Positions 567 to 3,843 of a stretch of 64,000 nucleotides of DNA are shown piece after piece (within the stretch, counting starts at the first letter, position 1; each line of letters starts with the position of its first letter). The notes beneath the pieces were generated by a model. It saw only the letters and a list, made by a program, of their open reading frames with translations, was not told the DNA's origin and searched no databases. The position numbers were made by a program, and so were the translations under genes. The stretch is from Octopus bimaculoides (taxonomy: Eukaryota). The DNA lies in the NCBI RefSeq assembly GCF_001194135.2, contig NC_068984.1, positions 89,313,957 to 89,377,956 of the forward strand, in the 5' to 3' direction.

Positions 567-744
567 ATATCCTTTCTTACTTATATTTACTAACTCTGAT
601 TATCTTACAAAGTATTTAATTACTTATCTTCCTTCTTTTACTTTGTCATCATCAATGTAGTTGCTGTTAGCGATGGGGATTTTAATTAATTAACATATGT
701 ATGGAAGTGTCTTCTTATTAGTGTTAATATTAAATATCCATCTA

Positions 745-945
745 TTAAGGCAGCAAGCTGGCAGACTTGTTAGCATGTTGGGTAAAGTGCTTGGTAGCAT
801 TTTGTCTCTCTTTACATTCTGAGTTCAAATTCTGCTGAGGTTGACTTTACCTTACAGGGTCAATAAAATAAATACCAGTTGAGCATTGGGATCAATGTAA
901 CTGACTTTTTGCTGGCCTTGTGCCAAAATTTCAAACCAATATTAA
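745..945 (+). mobile_element. tRNA-headed SINE with Nin/Deu-like central domain (family A)
   Basis: A-box-like TGGCAGA, B-box-like GTTCAAATTC, central GTTGACTTT...GGTCAATAAAATAAATACCAG. Many other copies occur in the window. Confidence 0.7.
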
Positions 946-1399
946 ATATCTATATTTTCTAAGTATTTGCATATTATTTATTTAAGATAGTCACCTTTCT
1001 TTCATCCTAACTTTTGTTTATGTTAAAACCATATCACCTATCTGTTAGATTATTGTTTTTCTCTCGGAAAATCTGAGTTTTTCTTCTGCAATAGATTGGT
1101 CCATTAGGGATATTGATGAACAGATAATCCACCACCTGTACGGTATTCATGTTACATCAGTAATTTTTTAATATTTTATATTATTCACAAATAACTCATT
1201 TAGGGATTTGAAGCTGGCTTTGTAGTTGTCAAGAGATTATCAAGTTACATGGGCAGTAATTCATATTCCATCATTAATATAGTGCTGTATCTGTGACAAA
1301 GACACTTAGCTCTCAATTCCTCAGTGTAATTAGTTGTATAAATATACCTAGTACCATTGTCATCCATCTGTCCATTTTCTGCACCCACTATTCCTTGGT

Positions 1400-1735
1400 G
1401 ATTGTAGGGGTAGCGTCCTCAGGTACTTACTCTACTTACTTCCTATCAGAAGCCGCTATCATTAGACTTTCTGGCTGGATTCCCAAGTACGATCAACTGA
1501 GACTATGGAAGTTATCCAACCATCTCATTCTTAGTCTGCCCTTAGGTCTCCTGCCAGTTGGCTTGGCTTGAAGAATCTGTCTTGGGATTCTTTCCTGTGA
1601 CGTATGTGTGTAGTACTGGAGCTGTGACAGTTTAGTGCATTGAAGTAGTGACTTGAGCTGAAGAAACTCCCTGATCTCTGACTGCAACCTGTTGAGTGAT
1701 GTCAGTACAGAGAGCCTTTGGAGGAACCCCATCTT
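1400..1735 (-). mobile_element. RTE-clade LINE ORF2 C-terminal fragment
   Basis: ORF 1493..1732 has ERIPRQILQAKPTGRRPKGRLRMRWLD, the RTE-type G.R..GRP..RW motif. Confidence 0.7.
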
Positions 1736-1889
1736 GGCTCCTTGTATTTGTGATAGTAGTCTTCCATTTATTCCCCAACATTCATGACCATAGGTGATAT
1801 ATAATTAATGAATTTTTCCTTAGCTTGCAGTGCTGCGCTCAAAACATTCTGTGGCTAAAATTAGTGTTGGACTATTAAGAAAGAGAAAT

Positions 1890-3152
1890 ACCTGAAAAGT
1901 TCATAGGTTGGCTATGAAGGAGTGATGCTAGAGCTGTGAAACCTTGCATGCATTAATTTCAACTCTTATTAAAAACTGCATTGTTTCTTTCCAGGTAAAC
2001 TCACATCTGACTGTTCAAAGACTCTAAAAGTAACTGGTAGCAACTTCTCTTGAAAATGAACAAAATTTGGTGTCATGACGTTATGAAGTACCTGCAGAAA
2101 ATGGGTTTTATTCCCAACAACATTCATACTGATATGGTTGCTACATTAGGAGATGACGCACCAGCTGTATCAACAGTGCAAAAGTCAGCAGCTGAATTTA
2201 GGAAGGGAAGGGAGAATCTTGAAGATGACCCAACATCATGCAACTGCCACCACCAAGAGAAACATTGATCATGTTCATCACATGGTGATAGAAAACATGA
2301 TTGACTGTAAATTAAATAGCCAATGTTATTAGCATATCCCGTAAGAGAGTTAAGAATATTCTGCACAATGAATGTAGTATGATGAAGGCTTCTGCTTGGT
2401 GGGTGCCATGTCTTCTGACACCTGATCAAAAGCGTGCCAGACTGAGATCACATCGGTGGGAAATCTGGCATTGATCCAGCTGGCTTCCTTGAATGTTTCC
2501 TAAGCCAAGAAGAGTTCTGGGTTTGTCATTTTGAGACAAAGACAAAGGGAGAATCCATGCAGTGGAAAAACCCCTTCTCACCTGCTCCAAAGAAGGCCAA
2601 GTTAGTTTCATCTGCAGAGGTGGTGATGGCCTCAGTTTTTTGGGATGTAAAAGACATTGTGTTTATTGACTATCTTCAGAAGGGCTACATCATCAATGTA
2701 TAGTACTAAGCCAACTTGCTGAGGTAGTTATGAAAGGCTATCAAGACCAAACACCCAGGAAAACTGATGAAAGGGGTCTTGTTTCATCAGGACAATGCTT
2801 GAGCACACAAGTCCTTGGCTTCAATGGCTGTTGTGCATGACTGGCTTTGAACTGGTTGATTACCCTCCCTATTCTCCTGATTTGGCCACATCTCACTATC
2901 ATCTGTTCCCCAACATGAAAAGACACTTGACTGAGAACCAATATGGCAGTGATGATGACGTCATATCTGCTGCTGATGACTTTTCTGATCAACTTGCTGA
3001 AAACTTCTTCCCCATTGGGATCCAAGCACTGCAACACCAATGGAGTAAGTGTGTGCTCTGCCAGGGAGACTATATTGAAAAATAAACCTCATTTGGTTGC
3101 ATTCCATGAGGGTATTTTGGTCAGCCTATGAACTTGTCAGCCGATCCTCATA
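1890..3152 (+). mobile_element. Near full-length decayed mariner (DD34D) inside the U12 intron
   Basis: Transposase pieces MNKIWCHDVMKYLQK...AAEFRKGRENLEDD, WVPCLLT, FHQDNA and YSPDLA. TIR match TGAAAAGTTCATAGG (about 1893) with CCTATGAACTTGTCA (about 3125). Stops and frameshifts present. Confidence 0.9.
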
Positions 3153-3843
3153 TGAAAGTGGAAATATATTCCAGTTGAAGTTTTCCATTATACACTATTA
3201 ACTGCAGTTGGCACATTGCTGCTAACATTTGGTCTGCTACTTAAGATGTTAAAATGAAATATGAGAAAGAAAATGTAAAATAATTATAATTACAAGTTAT
3301 AAATAAAATATTAGTGAAAAGTTAAAATAAGATAAATATATAATAATAGTTTTTAAAAAAATGTGTTCCTTGTTTTGAATCCAAATCCACACACTTAATG
3401 CTATGTACTTCACTTAATCTATATGTTAGAAAAAGGTACATTTTCTAAGAATGTCACCCACAACAGATACATTCAGATAGTGTTATATTTCTCAACATCT
3501 TAATGCTATGAAATCAGAAATAAACTGTTCATTATGAGCCTTTCTGGATTTCTTGATGACATTTATTTATTTACTTAGTTTTCTTATTTTCTTGACCCAG
3601 ATATGTTTTGGCCTCAAACGTCTGCATATGGTATCATTTAGGAAGACTTCTAACAGTTACATGGAAGTATTTCACAAAATATGAGTTATTACATAAGGTT
3701 GATATTCTGATCAATTTTACTTAATTTCTTGCATCCAAATGTCCACATCATGTATCTATTGAATCCATTTATATTTTCACTATCTTATTTGACTTTCTCA
3801 TTTTGTATTAAGTTAACTTGTTACTTGCCTTAACATTTGCTAC

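Follow-up and report, generated by a model that had tools for sequence, protein, structure and literature searches.

A predicted U12-type AT-AC intron, enlarged by transposons, within the second-domain HxGH motif of octopus PCYT2

The octopus gene for PCYT2 (CTP:phosphoethanolamine cytidylyltransferase) very probably carries a U12-dependent AT-AC intron, in phase 1, inside the first histidine codon of the HxGH motif of its second cytidylyltransferase domain. The gene lies in a 64,000-nucleotide stretch of Octopus bimaculoides DNA (assembly GCF_001194135.2, contig NC_068984.1), here called the window. The intron would occupy positions 567–3843, with base 566 joined to base 3844. Assignment to the U12 type was made by consensus matching together with comparative evidence. 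We infer excision by the minor spliceosome in Octopus from the splicing signals, the reading frame and the conservation of the intron position, each of which is set out below. A sequence-only reading of this DNA had proposed an AT-AC minor-spliceosome intron at these coordinates, splitting a histidine codon of HxGH. Direct reading of the bases confirmed the coordinates, the donor, the branch box, the distance from branch adenine to intron end and the C|AT split. The coordinates of all features are collected in Table 1.

Table 1. Features read or predicted in the 64 kb window
Feature	Position	Strand	Basis or remark
PCYT2 coding exon (...AGAFDLF + C of His codon)	428..566	+	AG before exon; first exon visible in window
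U12-type AT-AC intron (predicted)	567..3843	+	3277 nt, phase 1, termini AT...AC
U12-type 5′ splice site ATATCCTTT	567..575	+	consensus match 9/9, directly at exon boundary
Cryptic GT donor (AAA|GTATTT)	612..613	+	45 nt inside intron; equivalent of P0133 donor
In-frame TAA on intron retention	617..619	+	translation; 17 codons into intron
SINE-like interspersed repeat, about 200 nt	742..943	+	6 window matches (one is itself), about 68–73% identity
Fragment like C-terminal end of non-LTR retrotransposon ORF (…ERIPRQILQAKPTGRRPKGRLRMRWLD…)	about 1381..1800	-	translation
Defective mariner, gene orientation	1892..3150	+	Pfam Transposase_1, inverted arms
U12-type branch-point sequence GCCTTAAC	3827..3834	+	7/8 vs TCCTTAAC; branch A at 3833
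3′ terminal AC	3842..3843	+	direct reading
PCYT2 coding exon (AT of His codon + VGHCDFLEKAAAEGDFVIVGLHSDQ)	3844..3920	+	GTAAGA next; 100% identical to O. vulgaris
Cryptic AG acceptor (TTTCCTAG|AAAAAG)	3866..3867	+	24 nt inside next exon; equivalent of P0133 acceptor
PCYT2 exon	8898..8975	+	AG/GT flanks, homology
PCYT2 exon (YVSEVVIGAPYEVTSELMDHFK)	10996..11061	+	
PCYT2 exon	13070..13135	+	
PCYT2 exon (VPKERKKFKMLDSGNDLTTQKIVERIIRN)	15200..15288	+	
Last coding exon, visible end (KNEKELKILEAMKNNFH, stop TGA)	20266..20319	+	matches P0133 C-terminus

The signals at both ends of the intron are of the U12 type. The upstream exon ends ...GATCTTTTTC, with the final codons GCA TTT GAT CTT TTT C, the last C being base 566. 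The first ten intron bases, 567–576, read ATATCCTTTC, the initial AT being 567–568. At the other end, the last A of GCCTTAAC is followed by ten more intron bases, CATTTGCTAC, which reach the intron end. The interval between branch A and intron end contains ATTTGCTAC, and a pyrimidine tract is absent there. The following exon opens ATGTTGGTCAT, that is, AT GTT GGT CAT TGT GAT TTC CTA GAA AAA. Joining 566 to 3844 gives DLFHVGHCDFLEK and reads DLF-H-VGHCDFLEK in an open, stop-free frame, and the first His codon of the second-domain HxGH is the codon restored. Within the window, this is the only intron of PCYT2 that is not GT-AG.

Coincidence was assessed by counting the motifs. ATATCCTTT occurs once on the two strands of the window, against 1.3 copies expected by shuffling, and that copy lies at the exact base required. 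The pattern CCTTAAC-N5-12-AC has eight occurrences in 128 kb of strand, one of which ends at the exact required base. The probability that both motifs fall by accident on given positions is of the order of 1e-5 x 6e-5, and their exact placement makes chance an unlikely explanation. Three points weigh against the assignment. The branch box opens with G where the consensus has T; for Octopus, the 566-to-3844 junction is deduced from genomic sequence; and P0133, the only Octopus protein in the database, shows a different, cryptic GT-AG junction that possibly reflects real transcripts.

The predicted junction is present in apparent transcripts of relatives. P0123 and P0125 are the two closest database proteins, sharing 86–87% identity with the window peptide. 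Their source contigs (L005–L009), 2.8–3.1 kb long and free of introns, were assembled from sequencing runs and look like mRNAs. These contigs encode DLFHVGHCDFLEKAAAEGDFVIVGLH, with the DNA reading GATCTCTTTC|ATGTGGGACATTGTGAT, which is the junction predicted by 566|3844. The HVGHC signature that they share suggests that their source is another cephalopod.

P0133 raises the best of the rival explanations, in which the functional Octopus junction is a cryptic U2-type GT-AG pair, equivalent to an intron at 612–3867 of the window, used either for the main product or for a regulated isoform when minor splicing is limiting. This protein (O. vulgaris isoform X2), the sole PCYT2 sequence from Octopus that the database searches returned, has exactly that structure. 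It reads through as CATATCCTTTC... to the cryptic donor, which is joined to the cryptic acceptor in the next exon, deleting VGHCDFLE and leaving ILSYVYLLTVIILQK instead. The join is in frame, which explains why the model passed, and the pair is conserved in both octopus species. Conservation of the first ~175 nt of the intron is also higher than that of the rest (about 97% vs about 92%), and in mammals cryptic U2-type sites are activated around minor introns (PMC6717393). However, the cryptic donor is weak, and its product loses a motif that both octopus genomes and the transcripts of the closest relatives preserve intact. The exon segment that the cryptic pair removes is 100% conserved between the two octopus species. 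Four unrelated annotations (those of Nucella, Patella caerulea, Mactra and Coregonus) contain errors of the same kind, while sister species such as Patella vulgata are normal, and this scatter points to a modelling artefact. Use of the cryptic pair as the functional junction is, on balance, improbable. P0133 was also seen to start after the first HxGH motif (MAKQMGDY...).

A conventional intron elsewhere at this boundary was rejected by enumeration. When all GT and GC donors at 500–660 were combined with all AG acceptors at 3760–3915, no pair restored HxGH; only donor 612 gave an open frame, and every product lacked VGHCDFLE.

The motif could be located in 263 homologues, and beyond P0133 four more of these gene models fail at this intron. 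Nucella lapillus P0170 reads HILGPTLAPPLCVVVMSHTCSGLALFVRPHVGF, which fits in-frame retention of an 87-nt intron starting AT and ending C. Patella caerulea P0241 reads HILLTKWQKVAEQ..., against the normal HLGHLDFLEKVAEQ of P. vulgata; Mactra antiquata P0244 reads HILCIFYVGH; and Coregonus P0042, with RILMYRCVYIGH, has a GTATCC read-through. The expectation that a gene finder limited to GT-AG introns would mis-model the gene at the motif is thus borne out in public annotation. The tool intronIC corrects non-canonical boundaries only within about 10 bp (PMC10639083), so a canonical cryptic pair 45 nt away would hide the intron from annotation-based catalogues. There is practical value here in correcting PCYT2 gene models that lose a nucleotide-binding motif.

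For comparison, the genomic loci of eight relatives were fetched and the junction was located in each (Table 2). Look-ups of Pecten P0163 and Drosophila simulans P0020 gave no locus, and the set contains no arthropod. O. vulgaris was reached with a chimeric probe made of the P0078 N-terminus and the window peptide; the plain 172-aa query had matched only proteins of at most 301 aa, and no cephalopod.

Table 2. Introns at the same site of PCYT2 in eight relatives
Source	Termini	Donor	Branch box	Branch A to intron end	Length
O. vulgaris	AT-AC	ATATCCTTTC	GCCTTAAC	10 nt	3324 nt
Liolophura (chiton)	AT-AT	ATATCCTTTC	TCCCTAAC	10 nt	1555 nt
Haliotis rufescens	GT-AG	GTATCCTG	TCCTTGAC	11 nt	916 nt
Haliotis asinina paralogue	GT-AG	GTATCCTC	ACCTTGAC	11 nt	1832 nt
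Solemya velum	GT-AG	GTATCCTT	GCCTTGAC	10 nt	1895 nt
Lingula	GT-AG	GTATCCTT	TCTTTATC	12 nt	907 nt
Capitella	GT-AG	GTATCCTTT	TACTTAAC	13 nt	70 nt
Grey whale	GT-AG	GTATCCTC	TCCTTAAC	11 nt	260 nt

With the window, nine loci have an intron at the identical position and phase, with donors of the form /[AG]TATCCT and a TCCTTAAC-like box 10–13 nt from the 3′ end. The interrupted codon is His in every relative except Solemya, where it is AAT, for Asn (L010 24073). The O. vulgaris intron (L004 66258–69581) is orthologous end to end, at 92.4% identity, with ATATCCTTTC and TTGCCTTAACATTTGCTAC identical, and ATATCCTTT is identical in O. vulgaris and the chiton. The first ~175 nt of the octopus intron, of which 587–741 in the window was noted, are about 97% identical to O. 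vulgaris, compared to 92% for the whole intron; this could be constraint near the 5′ splice site or chance. In the chiton Liolophura sinensis the intron (L012 10512–12066) ends ...TCCCTAACCATGCATAT|ATTTGGGACAT, making a non-canonical AT-AT U12 pair, and the public model is correct there. The coral Desmophyllum pertusum (L013 1086–1391) was found to have the intron absent at this site, the DLFHIGL region lying in one exon. Its gene model looks truncated in the first domain.

The comparison reaches vertebrates. Human PCYT2 has an intron listed in U12DB (PMC7644725), the minor intron of mouse Pcyt2 is 379 bp (PMC6717393), and the second CTP site has been placed in exon 9 (PMC3588000). In the whale locus the only match to [AG]TATCCT[CT] on the gene strand is the donor of the intron in Table 2, which identifies this intron as the listed mammalian PCYT2 minor intron. 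By position, phase and motifs, the octopus intron is orthologous to the vertebrate PCYT2 minor intron, and on this comparison the position dates back to the origin of Bilateria or earlier. The suggestion that the position may be ancestral therefore stands, with U12-type introns at the same position and phase in whale, annelid, brachiopod and five mollusc loci. The comparison with human and other molluscs that the sequence-only reading had proposed gave the same answer, as PCYT2 is catalogued among the minor-intron genes of human and mouse, and mollusc orthologues share the site. A Drosophila ‘Pcyt2’ has been shown to depend on the minor spliceosome (PMC7644725). It was set aside as the fly counterpart, being described there as phosphocholine cytidylyltransferase 2. 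Octopus sinensis was in the species set of a study of minor-intron conservation, in which molluscs were relatively enriched in minor introns (PMC10639083). The annotation of grey whale PCYT2 is divided into two models (L002 1–2918 and 3001–4929), one per domain, and the split lies upstream of the minor intron.

Three states of the termini are found at this one site: AT-AC in Octopus, AT-AT in the chiton, and GT-AG in Haliotis, Solemya, Lingula, Capitella and whale. AT-AC introns of the U12 type, and switching between the AT-AC and GT-AG subtypes, were reportedly described by Burge, Padgett and Sharp in 1998. The ‘HIL’ read-through peptides of Nucella, Patella caerulea and Mactra imply ATATCC donors, as judged from protein only, and AT-type ends would thus be widespread in molluscs beside GT-AG ends. 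This ancient U12 intron may have switched its terminal dinucleotides repeatedly within molluscs, a proposal that we make tentatively and rate at a little under even. A weaker addition to it is that an HxGH-less Octopus isoform could arise through the cryptic pair when minor splicing is limiting. If true, repeated switching would offer a natural series for the study of U12 subtype change without intron loss.

The comparison also bears on which spliceosome removes the octopus intron. Terminal dinucleotides alone reportedly do not define the spliceosome (Dietrich et al. 1997; Wu and Krainer 1997), and an intron with AT-AC ends could be removed by the major spliceosome, which is how the rare U2-type AT-AC introns are spliced. 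This is very unlikely for the octopus intron, in which the perfect ATATCCTTT, CCTTAAC 10 nt from the 3′ end and the lack of a pyrimidine tract are U12-type determinants, and whose GT-AG orthologues keep the same U12-type motifs. That the locus is a decaying pseudogene or assembly artefact with coincidental motifs is hardly credible: the assembly is a draft with four N gaps, one of which swallows the beginning of the last coding exon, but all visible exons are open with proper splice sites, they are 98–100% identical to O. vulgaris compared to 92% for the intron, and colinearity with O. vulgaris, in an assembly of chromosome level, holds for >20 kb.

The identity of the gene rests on homology. 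The window peptide matches Pfam CTP_transf_like (PF01467) with E=1.6e-18 and human ECT (PDB 3ELB) with E=1.6e-100, aligning to the second domain of 3ELB. The translation of exon 428–566 matches both 3ELB and O. vulgaris P0133. Database homologues are all named ethanolamine-phosphate cytidylyltransferase. By these matches the window gene is the Octopus orthologue of PCYT2, with a predicted activity, from orthology, of CTP + phosphoethanolamine -> CDP-ethanolamine. The window starts inside the gene and covers the second domain only, with HVGH intact, the first domain lying upstream; both cytidylyltransferase domains are present in the colinear O. vulgaris gene and in P0123. Colinearity with the O. 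vulgaris PCYT2 locus (L004) extends over >20 kb at about 91% identity, and outside the mis-modelled stretch the window protein and P0133 differ at 2/172 residues. In the first-domain repeat of L012 and L014, the closest intron precedes CFDMVHFGH, following ...VWVDG, and does not interrupt the His codon, so the minor intron is not mirrored in the internally duplicated domain.

Downstream, the four complete further PCYT2 introns are all GT-AG and 2008–4977 nt long, and a fifth starts GT and then enters a gap. Because these neighbours measure 2.0–5.0 kb, a 3.3 kb intron is unremarkable for PCYT2. The start of the last coding exon falls in the N gap at 19787–20265 (479 N), and the residues between ...ERIIRNR and KNEKELK... 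are unreadable in the window. The other gaps lie at 9651–9800, 22932–22941 and 60577–60757.

The sequence-only reading had called the interrupted residue the catalytic His. The motif itself is intact in Octopus as HVGH. Among the 263 homologues, the second-domain motif is HxGH in 213, HxGL in 18, HxGY in 11, HxGF in nine and NxGH in six, so that 44 of the 263 carry one of the four variants. HxGL is found in cnidarian-like sequences and Lingula, HxGY in a set that includes ticks, HxGF in Mytilus and Babylonia, and NxGH in Solemya (codon A|AT) and scallops. These variants suggest that constraint on the second-domain motif is relaxed in several lineages. Two titles in the reference list of PMC6060094 concern the same question: that of Tian 2014 states that the two CTP-binding motifs of human ECT are unequal in catalysis, and that of Maheshwari 2013 that Plasmodium ECT has only a single active domain out of two. 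Together with the variation among animals, these titles indicate that “catalytic” exceeds the evidence, and that part of the description is not retained.

The intron is filled largely by mobile elements, as had been proposed. Its length of 3277 nt was confirmed, and about 1.9 kb (58%) is repeat-derived. The largest element is a mariner in the orientation of the gene. A translation stitched over about 2055–3085 matches Pfam Transposase_1 (PF01359) with E=1e-12 and 48.2 bits, above a cut-off of 24, and inverted terminal arms lie at 1892–1910 and 3122–3140; the presence of a mariner inside the intron is secure on these two grounds. Its coding remnant runs over three frames, with frameshifts and stops, and contains no intact open reading frame (ORF) for the transposase, marking a dead copy. 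In O. vulgaris the orthologous copy still has its complete terminal repeats with TA on either side (CGAGAGTGGGCTGAAAAGTTCATAGG... / TGAGGGTCAGCTGACAAGTTCATAGG...), while the window copy has lost 26 nt that include the outer left terminal repeat (window 1882–1892 vs L004 about 67595–67625).

The other two elements were placed less firmly. The element previously named a short interspersed element (SINE) is a short, multi-copy interspersed repeat, with further copies in L004 and an O. vulgaris orthologue 94.6% identical; no tRNA head or Rfam match was detected by an Rfam gathering scan of the whole window or by ARAGORN over 1–22000, and we retain only the term SINE-like. The reported RTE fragment encodes a 101-aa peptide that resembles the tail of a reverse-transcriptase ORF from a retrotransposon without long terminal repeats (non-LTR). 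It is single copy in the window and 92.9% identical in O. vulgaris. A Pfam search with this peptide gave no match, and RTE is no more than a putative label. All three elements occur in O. vulgaris at 92–95% identity, and the insertions are therefore older than the divergence of the two octopuses. In the octopus lineage, the intron would have grown to 3.3 kb through the mariner, the SINE-like element and the retrotransposon fragment. Elsewhere in the window, all on the minus strand, 28405–28480 gives a short mariner-related match, 38398–38766 is an ORF with a Tc1/mariner-like ...VCGVITSGGDVMPPFIF... segment, and 32060–32479 is an ORF that may be an exon of another gene.

The signals fit a simple model of splicing. 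A 5′ site of the RTATCCTTT type is recognised by U11 and later by U6atac, and U12 pairs with the branch box. In octopus, the U11/U12 small nuclear ribonucleoprotein pair (di-snRNP) would recognise ATATCCTTT together with GCCTTAAC, with U12 pairing to CCTTAAC so that the branch A bulges out at a distance of ten bases from the AC end. Catalysis by U4atac/U6atac.U5 would then join 566 to 3844, restoring CAT and the peptide ...AFDLF-H-VGHCDFLEK.... If the intron were retained, translation would stop after 17 codons and the protein would be truncated before the second domain; use of the cryptic GT-AG pair would give a product without VGHCDFLE. As retention truncates the protein and the cryptic pair deletes the motif, production of full-length, motif-bearing PCYT2 presumably depends on the minor spliceosome. 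Mouse tissues differ in how far they retain the Pcyt2 minor intron (PMC6717393).

Each component of this locus has a known counterpart. The mariner resembles the Tc1/mariner family in its Transposase_1 remnant, its length of about 1.27 kb, its inverted repeats and, in the O. vulgaris copy, its TA flanks. It differs in being dead, with a truncated left end, and has no evident role in splicing. With AT-AC introns of the U12 type generally, the octopus intron shares the ATATCCTTT / TCCTTAAC / AC consensus. A mixture of subtypes at one site inside one phylum was not found described. The truncation expected on retention has a parallel in mouse Pcyt2-gamma, in which partial retention of introns 7 and 8 leaves no second CTP site (PMC3588000); the mouse form is known from cDNA, whereas the octopus truncation is read from sequence alone. 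The closest counterpart is the vertebrate PCYT2 minor intron (U12DB/MIDB): gene, codon and phase agree, as do the U12-type motifs at the 5′ splice site and the branch point. The whale site, C|GTATCCTC ... TCCTTAAC-11 nt-AG, matches the octopus position. The vertebrate intron is GT-AG and short (260 nt in whale, 379 bp in mouse), whereas that of octopus combines AT-AC ends with a length of 3277 nt, about 58% of it derived from transposons. The octopus intron is thus a known ancient minor intron in AT-AC form, inflated by transposons, and it leaves the understanding of U12 splicing unchanged. What it adds is that the minor intron known from vertebrate PCYT2 also occurs in protostomes, in precisely the same codon, by which PCYT2, a gene of the Kennedy pathway, would have been linked to the minor spliceosome from the bilaterian ancestor onward, if not earlier.

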